DNA of 64,000 nucleotides. It comes from Magallana gigas. Lineage: Eukaryota. The translations under genes were made by a program, and so were the position numbers. Below are positions 14,301-25,700 of the stretch, one piece after another; within the stretch, counting starts at the first letter, position 1, and each line of letters opens with the position of its first letter. Below the pieces are notes generated by a model that worked only from the letters and a program-made list of their open reading frames with translations, did no database searches and was not told the origin of the DNA. The stretch covers positions 41,540,001 through 41,604,000 of the forward strand of contig NC_088858.1 in the NCBI RefSeq assembly GCF_963853765.1, in the 5' to 3' direction.

Positions 14301-17300
14301 GTCCAGTAAAAGCTATAGCATCAGCAGCAAGGTGCATTTTAAATTCAGAACATGTTGATGCACTTTATTTCTGATAAATCTCAGCATATAAAAGATTTGG
14401 AATTATATAATTAATATGAACCCTTGACAGATGAAGTGAATGGTCTCACACAGATTAAATGATTCTTTTATGAAATTGTCAAATTTAAAATAATACTTCT
14501 GTAAAATATTCCCCAGCAAGGATTATAATTACCATGTACATATGTTGCTTTTCAATTTATAATTATGATATAAGTATATGACTACTTATATAGGCATATA
14601 ATTACATGTATATGTGTGGATATTTTTAGATATTGAAATGATATACTAGGGAAAATAATTCTTAATGGTTCAAAAATCAAATTAACCAAATGATATTACT
14701 CCCCCCCCCCCCCATTAAAAAAAATATAAATGGGAAATTTCCTAAATTGATAGAGAGAGATAGTTTAAACAGTAATGTAGAACTAGCAGCAAAATGCCAT
14801 ATCATCCCGTTATATTCTGTACAGTGACAGTTTTGAATGAAATAAAATTTTGGTGGAATGAAATTCATTGATCCGCCCCATGTTATGTATATATTTAGCA
14901 CTGCTGTCTCCAGAGGGCGCTTATCAGGAAAACGAAAGTAGAACGGTCATGGCCATTTTTTCGCTGCTTTTTTCGTGTTGGTTGTATCATGTATGGACAG
15001 GGTGGATGTACCGGTATATATTAGACATTACTTAGCTTTTACCTGACAGAGAATTATGTGAAATGGGAAACGTACCTGTTATAGTTTGTTTGACAACCTT
15101 GGTTTGGTCGCAAAAATGGAGTTAGGAGCCATCTCTTTGAACAGGTTGGGACCAATCGCCCAAATGGGATAGAATATCCCAAACGGGTTATTATGACCCA
15201 AACGAGCTATATATAGATATCCCGCACGGGCTACATAACGCGGTTTTTTTTTCTGCAAGAAAAAGAAGACTTGTTTCCGCAAGATGTCGAGTACATTGGT
15301 AAGGAAATTGAGTCATTATCTGTAGATTGAGTTAAATTCTACGTATTTTTCATCCCTATTCACTTCATAAACTTATTTACTAAAACATGAGTCAGTCCTT
15401 TTGCACGGTGACCTTAACTGTTTTTCTTTAAACTTACCTTTATGTTCTAATATCAACAAAAGTTGAAGTAATTTTCTTCGACACTAACACATGGAAGACA
15501 TATTGAAACAATAACTTCTCGCGAGATCAAATTATCCAATCAGAAAATGGCTATGATCTTTGGTGTGGTTGAAATTTAGAGCTTATTGTATGGAGCACCA
15601 GAAGGACTAAAATAAAATATTAATTTATAAGGAAAATGAAATGCGCCAATAACATTAGATTTCGTTCTATATTATAAAATATGACGTTAATATATTAAAT
15701 TTGCATTGAAATTTTTTAACAGAGAAAAAATGGCAGAAGCGGAAAAGTTTCTAATCTAACTCTTGGGAAGAACAGGAGACAGGTTCCATCCCAAGTTGGA
15801 TCAAGGAGCGTTAGCCAATCATTTTTTAAGAGAAAAAACACTCTTCTAGAGAAAGTAAGAATATGTTTTATTAATTGTTTTCAATTAAATTAAATAAATA
15901 AAGTTTATATTTACAAATATACAATTTTGATTATATAATATGATGATATTATGATGTAACATAATGTGATGTTTCATTATATATATATACAATATTTACA
16001 AATAAATAAAGTTTATATTTAGTATTATTTACATATCACACTGTTTTTTTAAAATATCATACAATATATACAGATAAAAATACTACATTTGTGAAACATT
16101 TACATATTCTAATTGCAAGTTTTACAGGTGTATTTACAATTATGTGATAAGGAAAATAACATTCCAAGTAATTGTCAGCATAAAAATTGCAATATATACA
16201 TATAAAAATTTAATCATTTCGGCCCTCCGATTTTAAAACATCATGATAAAATTTAAGAATATCTGCTTTTGTCTTCGATTTAACTTTCCTCCACTCGGCA
16301 TTGATTTTCTCATTGTTTATATCCTCAAGTTCACCTTCAATTATCTTAATAATTTCGGGTTTTGTTTTATTAACAATGGATTCTGCTTTTGTCCTTTCGT
16401 CTGTGAGAACAAAAATCGGAGGAAATTTTTTTCTGTCACTGAGGCTGTGGTTGATAATAAAATTCATAAAGTCTTCGCGGTGTCGCAATGAGTTTACGTG
16501 AAACTCCGTCAATGAACGGTCCAAGGATTTCCCACTAAAAGACGTGTGACTCTTTTCTTTGAACGGCTCATTTATGTAGCCTGATTCTCTGATAGACTGT
16601 CTAAAACAATTGATTTCAAAATCAATATTGTACATGTAAGCGTATTCGGCATCAAGCTCACAAATGCATAGAGCAGCACTCAAGTTTCCTCTGACCTATA
16701 CAAAAATATGAAAAGTTTTGTAAATAAATTGTTTAAAAATAAAAAATAAAACGATTGTAAAATTATTTCATTAAATTAAACATCGCAGAAAAAAGTTAAA
16801 GAAATGACATAGTAAAAGGTAACGGAAATCGGCTTTGCCACCCCCACCCCAAGAAAAAATGGCGGCACCCCCCCCCCTTTTCAAAAACACAATTCTCAAT
16901 AATTTTGGTTCAACACACGCATTATTATGATTGGAAATGTATAATGATGTTAAGATATATATGCATTTGTATGAAAAATATACATGCATGTATCTACTTT
17001 AGGCAAAAGAGATACACGAAACCACAGGCGCAGACTGCGTCTTATACTTAAAGAGCCCTGGAGGGACAGAATATGTGTACAAGTCTGCAGGGGTGAATTT
17101 TGACTTGGTAATAAATTAATGAATACTTTATTTCATATATAAATATTTTATGTATGAACGTCATAAAAAAGAACTCAATTAATATTAAAAGAGTACTTTT
17201 ATTCCCTATGTTATAAATTTCAGGGAAAGATCAATGTTCAAGATGGACCCCAACAAAAAGAAGACGTCCCATCTACAAGCTCAATGGACCCCAGGACATC

Positions 17301-19740
17301 CCTGTCGTTGTCACCCATAAGGAGCAGGACGCGCCATACAGAGACGCAGACATCGGAGTCCTCCTTCTCCACAGTTCAAGATTCTACACTGTGTAGATTC
17401 TGTGGAGAAGGGAGGAAAGATACCAAGGCTCTCTGGATTGGGTGTTCACATGTCTCGCAGCGTGGGCGGGTGAAGCAGACATGCGAGTACTGGGTGCATG
17501 CTTTGTGCGTTGGCATTACAGCCACAACCAAAGCACCTCTGAGCAGAATTGGATGGAAATGCCCTCACCATATCATGATTGCTAAAGATAATGCTAAAGA
17601 TAAGAATAAAAAAAGTAAATGAGTTATTGGGTTTTTTTATTTCAAAATGGCTGAAGTTACCTTTTCTAGTTTGTCAATGCACCTACAAACATTTCTCCAC
17701 TTCTCCTCATCAGGCACTCCATTTTGGATCCACATCTTCGTTTTCCTGTTTTTGGCTTCTAATATAAAATCACCCCCCTCACCCTTGGCATCACTGCCAG
17801 AAACTCTGTAGGACTCATGTTCCTCAATAAACCCACGTACTTTACTTGGGCACTGAATTCGAACAAATGAGTCCCTCATATATGTCTCCATGTAAAATGG
17901 CATGTTAAGGCCAAAGAATAATGGTGAAAACTTTGTTTTAGACGCATTAATTGCTGTGGAATTGTTGCGCCTGACCCCTGCTCTAAATACATGGAGGGCA
18001 AGGCAGTATGAAAATACTACCTCAGCCATAAACTTATAATTGGGGTTTTTAACCCCAACATACCATTCATAGAAGCCACTGACAGAAGGCGAGGATGTAC
18101 TCGGATCCCTCACATATACCAACAAAAGCTCTGCAGCCATTGACTGCAGAAATATCTGAAAAATTTGCCAGCTTTTGTGGTGGTCTGCAAAATAAATGTC
18201 ATAAGATAAAAGTTGGGACAAAACTTTTTTAATATTCGTTTTTATAAAATAAAACTATTTTATTTTTACCTGTTGCGCTCATAAATGAGGCTTGTGCTTT
18301 TGGGCTATTGAAGCCTAAAAGTTTTGCAAGATCTATAAGGATCACATCCCATAGCAGGCGAAATATGGCTTTCGTCATATTGATCTCATAATGACCAAGT
18401 CCTGAAATTAATATTGTGCATTTTTATATGGCATAACGCTGTATTTATTTCTTATTGATTACTAGAAAAAATACAAAATTTCCTTGTTTTATAAAATAAT
18501 TCAAAGAACTATGTACCAGGTAACATGACAATGTCGTTGTACTTTCTACACTTCTCTATGTCGACGTTTAGTGCATGGTCGTAATTCTTTATGTGCTCCT
18601 TGAAATCTGGTTCATCCATGAACTCCATGCCACAATCCGGACAGGTAAACATGTTCTCTACAAAAATATATTACGATGTCAATTTTGATTTCGTGTGATT
18701 TTTATGTTTACACTTTTAATAAATTAATGTATTTTAATTTGCGACAAACCGATGATTCTTGATGCAAGAGTATAGGGCAGGCCATCACACCCAACCATCG
18801 TCCATTTCCTCGCCTCACCCACCTTCGCCTTCTCTCGAATGTGATCAAGAACCTAAGAGCGTATAAATTTAAAATAAATATTAACAACTGCATGTAGTGG
18901 TTGACAAATAGATTGATGAATTAACGATTCATGACTTACAAACCTTCTCAACTGCCTCGTAAGAACAGGGGTTTTCGAAACATGGTTCTCCCATGATGAC
19001 AGTTGGATTTGGTCCATCGTTAGATTTAATGAAAGAATACCTAAAAAATTTAATGATCAAATCATTGCAAATTAACAAAAATGCAATTTTATCGAATTTT
19101 AATTTTGTATAAAAAATCCGTTTATTTAATAATAAAATAATATGTACCTTTCCTCTGCTGTAATATAAGTTATATTTAGCAAATTCTTATCAATGTTGTC
19201 CAGTCCGTTGTCATCCTGATGGCTAACAATTTTCTCTAATTTGTCTCTAATGAATTCATTTCTAAACAGACAAAAAATTATAAAAATATTTATTCAGCAT
19301 ATAATTTATCATTTAATTTTAATTTGATAATAAATGCAATGTGAGTTATAATTTTACTTATATAGAACATAATGTACCTATAGTGCCGAAACGTTTCGAA
19401 GTGTATCATATCAAGATCTTTCATTTTACTAATTGTATCTCGTTTGCCATCACTAGTGTGATTCATCCACTGTCGTGGAGATAGTTCCAGAATATGTTGA
19501 ATATTGCTCTCAATGTCCGGGATAATATGTACCATGGTGGTAACGACACTGGCCTTCCCTTTGTAATTCACCTCCACCTTCCATTTCTTCTCTAAAACCT
19601 ATGGTTGCAACACAAAAAATTATGAAAATTACCTAATTTGGACAGGAATATTTTTTTTTCAATTATAAATTATATGATACTGTTTTAAAATACATGTAAA
19701 TATACGTATACGACTATATGCTAACTCAAATAACTTGTAT

Positions 19741-19790
<50 letters not shown>

Positions 19791-22700
19791 TTTAATCCAA
19801 TTATTTGCCCCAAAATCCTTAACGTTTACCGTACATATAGAATTATATGTGAATATAAGCTTATTGCAACTAAAGTTTATGTTTATTATCACCTGATTAT
19901 TGTCAAAAAATGTTACAACATCAGCGTTTTGGGGGCATTCTATGGCGTCTTTGCTCTGCTCTGAAATCCAGTTCTGAACTGTTGTGTAGGATCCCGATGG
20001 ACTGCCCTTACACCCTATCCTCAAAGCGGATTTGCTACCAGTTATGTAGTATCTAGATAACATAAATAGAGATAATGATTTATTAGAATAAATAATTAAT
20101 TATGCAAACATCACATACACAGTACTAATGTGTAGATTGAATAAAATAGGCGTAATTTGACTGCAATTATAGTCATTACGTGAATACTTGTGTGTGTGTG
20201 TGTGGCTGTATTTTAAACATACCCAAGCAGATTTTGAGAGAAAGACATTGGTGAAACAAAGGAATTGTTTCTACACCCGTAGATAGACTCTACAGTCTTT
20301 GCTAGTCTAATTTCCTCACAAGCATCGTTGCAGATCCCTTTGATGAAATTAACTATAACATGGTTTCTTTCTTGCAACCAGTCTGAAACGACACACAATT
20401 ATAATAATAAATATTTATATCATAGATAATATATAAATATATTCAATAAATAATATAACAGTGTGTATGTGTGTGTGTGTGGGGTGGGGTGGGGGTGGGG
20501 GGGGGGGGTTGGTGTGTGTGTGTGTGGGGGGGGGTGAACATGTGCGTTTATTATCTATAATTTATTTATTTACCCTTCAGATTGAACGTTTCCAAGTAAT
20601 CTACATCTTTATACTGGCTCCCAGAAGTCACAGTATCCTCGTAAACTGCTTTGGTTTGTGTTTTTCCTAAAGTATGAAATATTTATTCAATACCAATGCA
20701 TAATTGCCTCCTTAAAATATATACACAGAGTTAGTTAATTGGTTTTTCTTTGAAATAATAAAATTTCATTTCGTCGTTGCTTGTAAAATATTACAGGTGT
20801 TAGTTAGAGGATATATTACCTAAAGCGTATGATAAGGAAGACAGCTGATCGCTTGTTAGTCTATTATTGGAAACTGCCCCCAGGAACTCTTCAAAATACT
20901 CCAAAATACTGAACTTCTTCTTTTTAGCCGCCTCCTCAGTCTCATCTTCGTGCTGAAGACACTGCTCAGCAAATTTTACACACAGAGAACACAAAAAGGT
21001 AGAATGTGGGAATATAAATTCCCTTTTCAACAAAAAGTTAACGACTTTAACTTTAATTTTTTTGTCGGATATTCTCTGAACAATCTCCTCGTCGTCTGGG
21101 AATAGGGTTGAACAGTATACATGCTGTTTGCAACTGCATTTGCGTTTAGGGGGCATATCTACATAAAAAATCATTAGATAAGATAAAGGTAAATATAAGC
21201 CTCAAAAATTTGTTTCACATAAATGAACATGTGTAACTAATTGTGTATTCAATCTTATTTGTTAATCTTATAAACATAATTTACTTTATATCAGCAATAA
21301 ATATTGCGGACCAGAATGCACCAGTATCAAATTCACTGGGTACCGTTTAATAACTCCAAACTTGCACATAATATCATCTTGATGAATTACATTTTTAAAA
21401 TCACGGATAAATTGCAGTAAACATGCTCATAGGGATTTAATGACTTTGGCAATATGTTTAGACAAATTAACACTAAGAACATTATTTTTCATATTTACAT
21501 AGGTAACGTAATATAATGATGCATGTATGTTAACCTTCATCACTTTTTATTCATTTGTGACATAGATTTTTAAACGTTTATACAACTTTCAAACAACATT
21601 TCCGTAAATTTTTCAATACGTTTCCTCAAAAACATATATACAAGAGTTTTAATAAAATTATTTAATAATTCTCATTATGGCGCACCATACATTCTATTTG
21701 AAAATATGACCTATTTTATAAAACACTCTTCAATTGGACAGTTAGTGATCACATGATCATGCAAGCTTTTCAAAATGGCGGAATGAAGTCGTGTTTTTCA
21801 GCAGGTAAGAGTAATTATGGCTTAACTGAAGTTTAAATAGCTTTAACAAGGAAAATGTAATCGTAAATATAAAAGAGACTTACTTTTCACCTTATGTTCT
21901 CGCACTTCCGCATCAGTTAAGGCTATGAGGACCGAATTTTCAGCTGCCTTTTATATACTTGGGCCCCTATGAGCAATCCAGATCCCTCGCAAAGAAGCGT
22001 ATTTTGGAAATTCTCGTGCAAAATATACCGCCAAATTTTATGTAGCCTGTTTGGGATATCTATATATAGCTCGTTTGGGTCATAATAACCCGTTTGGGAT
22101 ATTCTATCCCATTTGGGCGATTGGTCCCAACCTGTTGAAGGATACCCGCTGTCTCCTAGCAAATGCGTATGCACAGGGATTTTGTTTTGGTCAAACAATG
22201 ACTTGAGTCCACTCTCATTCAAGATCCTAGCGTCATGTGTTGAGCCTGGCCATTTCGCTACGACATCAATTATCTTGTGGAATGGATCAAAGACGACCTG
22301 TGTGTTGATGCTGTGGTAATGATGTCTGTTGACATATTCGTTTTCGTATTGAGAAGGAGCGATAATTTGTACATGTGTGCCATCGATGGCCCCAACAATT
22401 CCAGGAAACCCAGCGATTTTGAAAAACTCTTCTTGGTTTTTGCGAATTTCCTGAAGATTTAGTGGAAATTTAATAAACTGAGCACAAATTCGTGGAGAAG
22501 AGAGACATCTTAGAGTTGCAGTAATTGACCTAGAAACAGTAGGCTGCGAGACACCCATGTCGTCTCCATTGCACAACTGCATTTTACCGGTAGCTAAAAA
22601 TCTAAGTGTTAATAAAATTTTCTGCAGTGGAGAAAGTGCACAGTTTCTGCGTGAACCACTCATAAGTTCGTTACCAATCAACCCCTCTAGAAAACGGATA

Positions 22701-25700
22701 CCGGCTGAATCAAATCTGTACCTCTCAACAAGTTCAGCATCACTGTACTCTACCAAACAGTCTTTTCTTTTGCGAAAACATCTTCTGTGTGCTCCGATGG
22801 CAGCCATTTTGATTTTGAACTTAAGTTTTTCTTAGAACTTTAAGACACCTCAAGAGGACTCTTAGATTTAAGTATTGCTTAAGATTTTTCTTAGGCATAA
22901 GTTGTTTTATGAATAAAACTTAAGTTTAAAACAAATTCTTAGCGTGACTTAAGTATTTTTTATGAGTTTAAGTATTTTCTTACACTTAAGTGCTGTTAAA
23001 GTATCTTTATGAATCCCAGCCCTGATCTTTTAGTGTTGTTTTGAAGGTATTGTTATAAAAGCTTGACCCTCTAGTGTTTTATTAATAAGGTGTAAGTGTT
23101 TAACTCCCTAGTGTTGTGTTGTTGCGAAAGATATAAGAGACTGACCCTCAAAAGTTCTTTTGTAGGTATTGCTTTAAGAGTATGATCAGCTAGTGTTGTA
23201 TTGTAGGTATAGCTATAAGAGCTGTAAGAGTTTGACCTTTTAGTTGTATGTCTGACCATATGTTGTGATGTGTTGTAGCCAAAGGTTTAAATTTTTCAAC
23301 TTATGTTATGCTGTAGGTATCGGGCTCCGGAGTGTCTACTCACTGATGGGTATTATACCTACAAGATGGACATATGGAGTGTGGGCTGTGTCTTCTTTGA
23401 AATCCTTAGGTAAGTTACAAATATCAATCTAACTAAAATCAGATCTCTCTCAATGTCCTTAAGTTTTCGATATGTCTACAGAATATATCCAGAGGAGGAG
23501 ATTGAAGATCTTTTTTTTTCTTTAAAATTGTTCTAGACATACTGCTTTATGCAGATTAATATTTGTAAAATATTCATTTCAACAAAATGTTCTAGCCCTG
23601 CAACAACAAATCCTGCAGCATCAAATCTGCAAATGCAATTTTATGTGAATGCATTTTCTTCCTTACGTAAAGAATACTTTGCACAAAAACGTGTGAAATA
23701 TTTCATCAAGATCAATTGAATGCGAAATACATGTATTTGCATGTAAATAAAATCAGAAGATGATACTGTAAAATATTTTTTTGGTATCAATATTTTGCTT
23801 TGGATGTTAATTTAATGACTTCCAATCTTACTGTAAAAGTTATTCTGGTAGGTACTGGGTACTGTGTATATTAAATTGTTTCATACGTGTACTTTGTTTC
23901 TTTCAGTCTTCACCCTCTTTTCCCTGGTTCAAATGAAGTTGATCAGATTGCTAAGATACATGACATAATGGGTACTCCAGACTCCAGTGTTCTAGATAAA
24001 CTCAAAAAGTGAGTTCTTTTGTAGCTGTTAAATTCATTCATTCTTTTACTCAATATTTCAATCCTCATTACTGGCATGTTACCTCTGATTATTGGTGCAC
24101 AAAAGTTAAGTTTCTTCCTATTTCTTTTTTATCCAATTTACCCACATAAAATGTTATGGGCAAATATAAATCTTTTGCAATAAGGTACATTTTTCTTTTT
24201 TATATGTTAGAGGGAGAGAATTGTGTACATAAAAAAGATTATGTCTTAAATGTCAGAATGATTGGTCTTAGAAATCTTTACAATGAATGATAGATCTAAA
24301 TTGTTTGAGTTTTGCCCTGCTTCCGTGTAAAAAGTATAGTGTAAACTATACGTTTAGCCAAAATAAAATTATTTATTGGAATTGCCTATCCCCTTATTGA
24401 AATACATGTACCCCCACTTTTTTCAGGGAGATTTTTATTTTTTACCAATTTTCAATTAGTCAAACTACAAGTTTGAAAAATTAAAAAAAAAGTTCCCTCC
24501 CTCCCTCCTGGGCGTAAAAACCTCCAGATGGCAATTCCACACGAACATTTTTTAAGGATGTCCAATTGTAAGTTGTTATGTTATTTGTCATGCAGATCAA
24601 GGGGAATGAATTTCAATTTCCCCCAGAAGAAGGGTACGGGTATCGAACGTCTCCTCCCTCACTGTACGCAGGAGGCCATCGAACTTATTTATCAAATGTG
24701 CACTTACGACCCTGATGAGAGAATCACAGCAAAGCAAGCCATACGACACCCGTACTTCAAAGATCTCAGGTCAGTGTTAAAAACTGTAAAAAGTAGATTC
24801 AGCTTCTTTCTTCTCCCTTTTTTTTTAAAGCTTTTTTTTAGAAAACAGGAAAATGTTCAGTTGGGGTAATTTTCACTCAAATAAAAGAGGAAAAAGTACA
24901 TTAATTTGCTTTATTATTCTCTCACATTCTGAAAACTAAGTAATTTATTTGCATATCATGGCATTTGACATATGTTCTGAAAAAGTGAAGTTATGTCAAA
25001 GAAACAATGTTTATGCAGTTTTTTAAATTTTTTATCATCTTTAACAATTTTACACAGAAAAACCCATCCTTACTGTTGAAATTACAAGATTGTGTTAAAA
25101 CAATAAATGAATATATTTTTTATAGTCAACAATTTTTCTTTAAAATTTTTAACAAAATGTATATAAAGAATCAAATTAATATCAACATAATGCTTTGATT
25201 AGCATCACTATATTTCATAGGCATTGAATTTAAAAATACATGTTCTGTTATTCTATGAAATGCAACTTTAATTAATATGTTTAATCAGGGCAACAAAACA
25301 ATCAAAGCAAAGGTAGTATGGCAGATTGCACTATCAATTTTCCTTGTTGTTTTTTTTTTCTTGTGATAATATAATATTGATATATGAATTAGAAACTTAG
25401 ATATGTGTAATCCAGACATAGAAAAGGCAGATTCCATCTTGAATTTGCATATTTGACGTCTTGATGATGTCAGAGCAAGGATTGACATTAACCTTTGTAG
25501 ATTTAGAAACCTGCAAAGTTGACTGACGTAGATATTCTATTCAGTGGGAAGGGTTAATTTTGGGATATACTCAATTGACTCCAAGCCAGCATGCCTATTA
25601 GTTTCATAAATGTAAACTATTCAACTGTGCCTGTAGTCTAATTACTATTTCTACCTGAATTTGAAGCCTGTGTGACTCATCCAGTTAGAGGAATGCGCTT

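Follow-up and report, generated by a model that had tools for sequence, protein, structure and literature searches.

A 64,000-nucleotide stretch of the Magallana gigas genome (NCBI RefSeq assembly GCF_963853765.1, contig NC_088858.1, forward-strand positions 41,540,001 to 41,604,000), referred to here as the window, contains a DNA transposon of 6993 bp. Its limits, 15142-22134 in the numbering of the window, were fixed by reading the flanks of its termini. The element carries a transposase gene and a second, accessory gene, and each of its ends holds four 10-bp boxes that resemble the CArG sites of MADS proteins. The accessory product is predicted to combine a diverged MADS domain with a PHD-type zinc finger. 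On balance, the boxes are probably the subterminal repeats of a two-gene cut-and-paste element, bound by dimers of the MADS-PHD protein.

Box arrays in the element ends

The terminal inverted repeats were located by repeat finding and alignment at 15142..15238 (left, plus strand) and 22038..22134 (right, minus strand). The inverted ends are 97-105 nt long and 95% complementary, with the right arm of the detected repeat covering 22038-22142. At the left, the outermost 17-mer, CAGGTTGGGACCAATCG (15142..15158, plus strand), holds the motif CAGGTTGGG, which was common to all oyster families of the element, and a similar motif was present in another organism. From these sequences, we infer that the 17-mer is the end recognised and cleaved by the transposase. 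It is followed on the plus strand by box 1, CCCAAATGGG (15159..15168, offset 18), box 2, CCCAAACGGG (15178..15187, offset 37), box 3, CCCAAACGAG (15197..15206, offset 56), and box 4, CCCGCACGGG (15221..15230, offset 80). Reading of the sequence confirmed the positions, the letters and the spacings of 19, 19 and 24 bp that the initial annotation had given. The same applied to the variant fourth box of the right end, which reads CCCAAACAGG on the minus strand at 22046-22055 and follows boxes at 22108-22117, 22089-22098 and 22070-22079. The boxes also proved, as annotated, to keep a CC-N6-GG frame yet to differ from the canonical CC(A/T)6GG, with C at position 3 and G at position 8. Box 3 is degenerate, with a GAG end instead of GGG; in the L034/L038 relative, the sequence at this offset of 56 is CCCAAATGAG.

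The boxes are far more frequent in the ends than expected by chance. When up to one mismatch was allowed, CCCAAAYGGG occurred nine times in the window, with seven of the nine inside the 194 bp of the two ends, compared with a shuffle expectation of 3.96 for the whole window. Each end of ~97 bp held three CC-N6-GG frames, whereas background sequence of 234 kb contained 0.133 per 100 bp. Besides full copies, the genome contains diverged relatives and many gene-less miniature inverted-repeat transposable elements (MITEs) of roughly 180-760 bp. Altogether, 36 distinct ends from full copies, relatives and MITEs had in common the terminal motif CAGGTTGGGACCAATC and, after it, two to four boxes, and the spacing between neighbouring boxes was exactly 19 bp in 43 of 56 pairs. 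Box 1 held the same offset in relatives and MITEs.

The repeat unit of the MITEs, CCCAAATGGGATATAATAG, forms a plain tandem repeat, and past the last box the MITEs have no sequence relationship with the full element. The terminal ~75 bp are the sole part common to MITEs and the full element and are therefore likely to be the sequence that the family needs in cis. Among the MITE ends, box arrays ran forward-reverse-forward in 11 cases, forward-forward in six and forward-forward-forward in three, box 2 being inverted to CCCGTTTGGG in many MITEs. Perfectly palindromic boxes, CCCAATTGGG, also occurred among the ends, and the position matrix of the box reads CCC-A-W-W-T-GGG. Because the middle box is often inverted in MITEs and palindromes occur, the box is, judged by its sequence, a dyad site that works in either orientation.

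Across the related families, the terminal motif was common to all, and the boxes were not. L034/L038-type relatives, only 72-80% identical to the element, kept CC..GG frames at offsets 18, 37 and 80 with altered cores. The box at offset 18 was CCCAAAATGG in L048, and a canonical CArG box, CCTTTTATGG, was found in the L050 family alone. Box 1, which abuts the conserved terminal motif, started with CCCAA in three of four oyster families. Boxes were also present in the ends of L056, a locus of another organism, as CCTTATTGGG and CTCTATAGGG. The initial annotation had named related elements that keep the boxes and lack the MADS gene as evidence against a role of the MADS protein. The only gene-less carriers of boxes found were non-autonomous MITEs, and these do not refute such a role because MITEs depend on proteins supplied in trans.

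The accessory gene and its MADS domain

The accessory gene was modelled with four exons on the plus strand. Exon 1 (15284..15298), about 45 bp inside the left end, comprises an ATG, five codons and a GT donor and is conserved in the relative L031. Exon 2 (15723..15854) encodes the basic N-terminal arm and the first half of the MADS helix, ends with ..KRKNTLLEK, is bounded by AG and GT in phase 0 and has homologues in five other loci. Exon 3 (17003..17107) encodes the remaining MADS helix and a beta-hairpin, AKEIHETTGADC..YVY. This short plus-strand exon falls below the cut-off of 40 residues for reading frames and was exposed by translated comparison with diverged relatives. A linker, the PHD-type zinc finger (Pfam PF00628, E 1.3e-5, above the cut-off) and the stop codon are located on exon 4 (17224..17622). 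The predicted product has 216 residues, the splice signals are canonical and the phase is 0 throughout. An intron of 1148 bp between exons 2 and 3 splits the predicted MADS box. When public protein data were searched with the PHD exon, all matches were unspliced open reading frame calls and no gene model was among them.

The initial annotation had stated that the element encodes a MADS protein, which was borne out by profile similarity, intron position, predicted fold and predicted dimerisation. For profile comparison, a composite profile was built by joining exons 2 and 3 of six diverged loci and was aligned with hhalign to a MADS profile of 17 MEF2 sequences. The two aligned over 58 ungapped columns at MADS positions 3-60 with Prob 94.5 and P 8e-8. 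An insertion of 12 residues in the N-terminal arm of the MADS domain, which the earlier reading had implied, was dropped, as hhalign aligned the domain without gaps. The observed score of 40.2 compared with a mean of 9.2 and a maximum of 19.6 in 300 column shuffles and with 9.2 for the reversed alignment. Exon 3 alone matched the MADS profile in the expected register (1-31 on 32-62, P 0.0033), and each composite sequence scored 6-14 bits against the MEF2 model in the same register. In Smith-Waterman comparisons with the oyster SRF, the composites reached scores of 50-63, attained by 0-1 of 2000 shuffles. Identity to the MADS domains of SRF, MCM1 and MEF2 was ~20-34%.

The intron position is a further point of agreement. 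The host SRF gene (L045, G000:C6:18006051-18006908, minus strand) has a phase-0 intron in its MADS box between ..IMKK and AYELS... The intron in the MADS box of the element is at the identical position, in phase 0, after the helix lysine and before the following alanine, and L055, from a further organism, has a splice acceptor at the same MADS position. Since this intron is common to the MADS gene of the element and the host SRF gene, the sequences suggest capture of the MADS domain, in the form of genomic DNA, from an SRF-like gene of the host.

Structure prediction with AlphaFold2 was carried out for the uninterrupted domain of L056, using an alignment of element-derived fragments only, with zero canonical MADS rows. 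One long helix (residues 14-44) and a hairpin of two strands (49-52 and 62-65) were predicted, with a predicted local distance difference test (pLDDT) score of 72-86 in the core. In a Foldseek search of the PDB with this model, the top 46 matches were all MEF2, SRF, MCM1 or SEP3, with probabilities of 0.57-1.00 (at least 0.85 for the first 45) and a core root-mean-square deviation of 1.2-2.1 Å; the next match had a probability of 0.11. With VIA, the top three among 48,161 chains were MEF2D, MEF2A and SRF at modest Z scores of 4.6-5.5. The prediction of a symmetric homodimer for the L056 domain scored 0.66, versus 0.01 for the best of three controls, and placed helix and sheet residues 22-55 in the interface. 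The runs agreed in at least 93% of contacts and the partner pLDDT was at least 75. In the calibration of the homodimer mark, 21 of 30 proteins with structures of same-chain pairs and none of 23 solved as single chains attained it, and the pass of the L056 model may reflect memory of solved MADS dimers. Taken together, sequence profiles and structure models identify the accessory domain as a diverged SRF-type MADS domain.

The accessory gene accompanied the transposase gene throughout the group. The same pair was found in the oyster families L048, L050/L051/L053, L052 and L034/L038, which have their own ends and 5-bp duplications and transposase exons 47-74% identical. At almost all of the better-preserved transposase loci in the genome, a match to the PHD exon was located within ~1 kb. 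A convergent MADS-like gene after the transposase was also present at L056 and L055, loci of two other organisms. A PHD finger (PF22908, E 6.6e-5) is part of the accessory gene of L056; in that of L055, none was detected. The ratio of nonsynonymous to synonymous substitution rates (dN/dS) between families was 0.09-0.33 for MADS exon 3 and the PHD exon, which indicates that the accessory gene is under purifying selection. By these comparisons, the gene is kept alongside the transposase and is under selection, as would be expected of a factor in transposition.

Some more remote loci were also recorded. L058 was considered as a further relative and left out; it had no clear ends, and its MADS-like match was weak and on the same strand (E 0.032). 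Adjoining the transposase relative on this contig of another organism, a 2.4-kb element (L058:4397-6837) has inverted ends of ~300 bp that contain the GGGACCAA motif of the terminal sequence of the window family. Weak matches to PF00319 (E 0.66-4) occurred at G000:C7:41249912-41253449 and C6:37200855-37200932, 1-6 kb from distant transposase relatives at C7:41255288 and C6:37199594. MADS genes may also be present in more diverged families.

The transposase and the insertion

The transposase is encoded on the minus strand by a multi-exon DDE transposase gene at 16210..21174. Its stop-free coding pieces on this strand are 20803-21201, 20216-20398, 19746-20099, 19293-19598, 18932-19186, 18727-18852, 18512-18670, 18232-18423, 17640-18254 and 16213-16695. 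The accessory and transposase genes are convergent, and in the clade of the window element they are interleaved. The last transposase exon (16213-16695, minus strand) is located within accessory intron 2 and accessory exons 3-4 (17003-17622, plus strand) are located within a transposase intron. The same layout was seen in L038, whereas those of L052 converge without being interleaved.

Full-length relatives of the transposase have 900-1100 residues with PF12560 (RAG1_imp_bd) and DUF6589. PF12560 is the N-terminal 'Chapa' region of RAG1 (PMC4411706). It was not detected by Pfam in the N-terminal exon of the window element itself. A C2H2 finger was found by Pfam in the window transposase gene. 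In an alignment of 20 full-length relatives, C685, C688 and H701 were invariant and H706 nearly so (at least 90%), all between CDGLPY and DF.LEE.NR. The corresponding exon of the window element (18512-18670) has a C-x2-C and a histidine pair with five residues between the histidines. Residues 14-83 in the model of a transposase relative (P0088, m012491c9ee89) resembled Drosophila ZAD dimerisation domains at Z scores of 4.7-4.9 with 60-65 residues aligned, a model-based resemblance that is a possible clue to the function of the RAG1-like 'Chapa' region. A distant transposase relative of 27% identity at G000:C7:42147848-42148402 is part of an open frame that runs without interruption for 929 residues and may be an intron-less or domesticated copy.

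The element was assigned to its class by motifs and literature. Termini of the form 5'-CA..TG-3' and target duplications of 2-5 bp are described for the CMCT clade of EnSpm, Mirage, Chapaev and Transib (PMC12730594). The termini CAGG...CCTG and the 5-bp duplication of the element agree with both features, and the element fits a cut-and-paste transposon of this kind. With its 5-bp duplication and CAG..CTG termini, the element does not agree with a strict Chapaev element, which has duplications of 3-4 bp and CAC..GTG termini (PMC4079192). All features found point to CMCT and not to the superfamily Academ, which, judged by description, has an Academ-type transposase and a duplication of 3-4 bp. 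A transposase profile searched against PDB sequences gave zinc-finger matches only and no match to the RAG1/Transib core, and Foldseek with the transposase model returned nothing at E 0.001 or better. VIA recovered generic DDE folds, with Z scores of 8.1 for the P element, 6.4 for Hermes and 5.0-5.2 for RAG1. No RAG1/Transib core homology is claimed, because the sequence and fold matches are generic.

The element is flanked by target-site duplications that read TTGAA at 15137..15141 and 22135..22139. It is a clean nested insertion in a Harbinger-type DDE_Tnp_4 transposase frame. This frame (22143..22807, minus strand; Pfam PF13359, E 4.3e-17) is split by the element and resumes left of 15137 (15079-15136). 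Joined across the insertion, it reads ..LLGDSGYPSKRWLLTP.., which is an exact reconstruction of the empty site. The genome of ~564 Mb contains four full copies that are 99-100% identical and occupy separate sites, C9:45655732-45662756, C4:20526703-20533729, C1:4475771-4484462 and the window. The C1 copy has an additional insertion of ~1.7 kb at the equivalent of window position 16080. All four copies have a duplication of TTGAA or TTCAA, and more than 10 MITE pairs are flanked by 5-bp A/T-rich duplications of their own. A duplication of 5 bp was also found in three other families. The TTGAA/TTCAA of the full copies and the TTNAA-like duplications of the MITEs suggest a TTSAA/TTNAA target preference. 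Because of the four nearly identical copies at different sites and the many MITEs, the element is apparently active and looks recent in its activity. L033 was rejected as an autonomous relative; it consists of two MITE-type ends 6.3 kb apart without related coding sequence.

Reading of the boxes and comparison with known systems

In the preferred reading, dimers of the MADS-PHD protein would bind the 10-bp dyad boxes in either orientation, and the transposase would recognise the conserved terminal 17-mer. Arrayed along the ends, the bound dimers could mark and bend them and help to recruit or pair them. Such a division of labour between transposase and accessory protein is suited by the finding that the terminal motif, not the boxes, is common to all families. 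The geometry of the boxes is that of a MADS-dimer site, with a length of 10 bp, a CC..GG frame, an A/T-rich centre and dyad symmetry. SRF binds CC(A/T)6GG and MCM1 binds CCYWWWNNGG, a looser consensus that box 1, CCCAAATGGG, fits. That relatives with the accessory gene have boxes of this kind as well also speaks for the MADS-PHD protein. As the left-end boxes are located 55-125 bp upstream of the accessory ATG at 15284, they may also serve autoregulation of the accessory gene.

Several observations weigh against binding of the boxes by the MADS-PHD protein. The link between boxes and MADS domain is geometric and correlative. The boxes of the element itself are not canonical CArG sites, and its MADS domain is too diverged for the Pfam SRF-TF profile. 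CCC/GGG triplets are typical targets of zinc fingers, which the transposase carries, and the period of 19 bp does not correspond to an integral number of turns of the helix. The degraded family L052 is without a strict CC-N6-GG box in its ends, and L048 and L050 have one box per end, modestly above chance. Between the window element and the L034 copies, box cores have diverged at about the same rate as spacers, and the CC/GG flanks alone stand out. The accessory gene model is a prediction from splice signals, conservation and reading frame. The Pfam profile SRF-TF (PF00319) gave no match for exon 2, exon 3 or the uninterrupted L056 domain at E-values up to 1-10, and none of the stop-free pieces of the element matched it. 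A genome-wide scan with the same profile matched the host SRF and MEF2 genes and no copy of the element. Neither exon 2 nor exon 3 had a match in phmmer searches of PDB sequences, and the exon-3 profile retrieved only adiponectin (E 4.1) from the PDB. MADS scans with single exons fail because the intron splits the MADS box and because of the divergence. These blank searches are outweighed by the hhalign alignment, the shuffles, the comparison with SRF and the Foldseek matches to the predicted model.

The boxes could instead be multiple sites for the transposase itself, contacted by its N-terminal zinc-binding (Chapa/ZAD-like) region or by its C2H2 finger. The MADS-PHD protein would then do other work, such as chromatin targeting by the PHD finger, nuclear import or regulation. 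Such a system would resemble the Ac and P elements and the Tc1 elements of the IR/DR type, and among cut-and-paste elements it is more commonly the transposase that binds the subterminal repeats. The PF12560 region and cysteine/histidine motifs of the relatives, the ZAD-like model region, the C2H2 finger of the window gene together with the G/C triplets that suit zinc fingers, and box 1 adjoining the terminal motif with its recurrent CCCAA start are in line with transposase binding. However, the DNA-binding family of the second gene would then by coincidence be the one to which the 10-bp CC-N6-GG dyad shape of the boxes is specific. The orientation-independence of box 2 is also more readily accounted for by a symmetric dimer than by a directional array of zinc fingers, and it is the terminal motif rather than the boxes that is conserved across all families. 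We regard transposase binding as rather unlikely.

A mainly transcriptional function, in which the boxes are CArG-like promoter sites read by host SRF/MEF2 or the MADS protein of the element and are dispensable for the DNA reaction, is improbable. The proximity of the left boxes to the accessory ATG, the host genes for SRF and MEF2 and the canonical CArG box in one family agree with it. A pure promoter role cannot explain, however, why gene-less MITEs have kept the boxes and their spacing and little else and have spread to many sites, and a distance of more than 850 bp separates the right-end boxes from the start codon of the transposase. A promoter role could coexist with end-binding by the MADS protein. 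The lowest probability, that of a very remote prospect, was given to neutral tandem duplication of a 19-bp unit with a coincidental CArG-like appearance. The plain tandem structure of the MITE unit and the drift of box cores between families at about the rate of the spacers are what such a process would produce. It is opposed by the persistence of CC/GG frames at fixed offsets across relatives as distant as L034/L038, by analogous boxes in ends from another organism and by the retention of at least two boxes in MITEs.

Binding of the boxes by MADS-PHD dimers has parallels in other two-gene systems. In PIF/Harbinger elements, including Ping/Pong-mPing and the system reportedly described by Sinzelle and colleagues in 2008, a separate Myb-like DNA-binding protein is said to bind subterminal repeats and to recruit the transposase. 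The window element resembles them as a two-gene cut-and-paste transposon with MITEs mobilised in trans. It differs from them in that they have a PIF/Harbinger transposase, a 3-bp TWA duplication and a Myb/SANT accessory protein instead of MADS and PHD domains. Binding was demonstrated there, whereas for the window element it is proposed. In En/Spm (CACTA) elements, TnpA binds short subterminal repeats in both orientations and is thought to join the ends. The En/Spm TnpA/TnpD system shares with the window element the broad CMCT clade, the CA..TG termini and, in the preferred reading, an accessory protein on subterminal repeats; it differs by its 3-bp duplication, CACTA termini, 12-bp motifs and a TnpA that is not a MADS protein. 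TnpA originates from alternative splicing of one transcription unit, whereas the window element has two convergent, interleaved genes. Chapaev, Chapaev3 and Transib are similar in their CA..TG termini, and the 5-bp duplication of the element matches Transib/RAG (PMC4411706, PMC4079192, PMC12730594). A MADS accessory gene was not described for these three groups in the literature searched.

The accessory domain shares with SRF, MCM1 and MEF2 the order of basic arm, long helix and beta-hairpin, the predicted dimer and, for oyster SRF, the intron position. It differs from them by its fusion to a PHD finger and its location on a mobile element, and SRF sites have A/T at positions 3 and 8 where the boxes have C/G. 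The RAG1-RAG2 and ProtoRAG systems are comparable in the RAG1 N-terminal region of the lineage, the 5-bp duplication and a second protein with a PHD finger (PMC4411706). RAG2, in contrast, is a Kelch-repeat protein without a DNA-binding domain, and the resemblance to RAG is a lead only, with no core homology claimed. We tentatively propose, as a scenario with somewhat less than even chances, that a CMCT/Chapaev-like lineage, present in oysters and at least two other organisms, captured an SRF-type MADS domain together with its intron from a gene of its host, fused it to a PHD finger and uses dimers of the product on CArG-like boxes to define its ends, with the PHD-bearing partner as a parallel to RAG2.

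No description of a MADS-encoding transposon was found in the papers and preprints searched for MADS with transposase, Chapaev or PHD; Repbase reports lay outside that search. Accessory proteins on subterminal repeats are already known from Harbinger/Myb and En/Spm TnpA, and a MADS domain in this role was not described in the literature searched. To our knowledge, all other MADS proteins described are cellular transcription factors, and the capture of a transcription factor by a transposon would be the reverse of the usual domestication story. Because the element looks recently active, binding of the boxes by the MADS-PHD protein is directly testable with the small domain and short oligonucleotides, and the system could supply a compact, programmable module for end recognition. 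If the proposed scenario is true, the element would provide the first known MADS domain with a function in transposition, and the PHD-bearing partner would be an independent parallel to RAG2. The combination of a transposase of the RAG1 N-terminal type, a 5-bp duplication and a PHD-bearing partner is also relevant to how RAG-like systems gain accessory chromatin readers.

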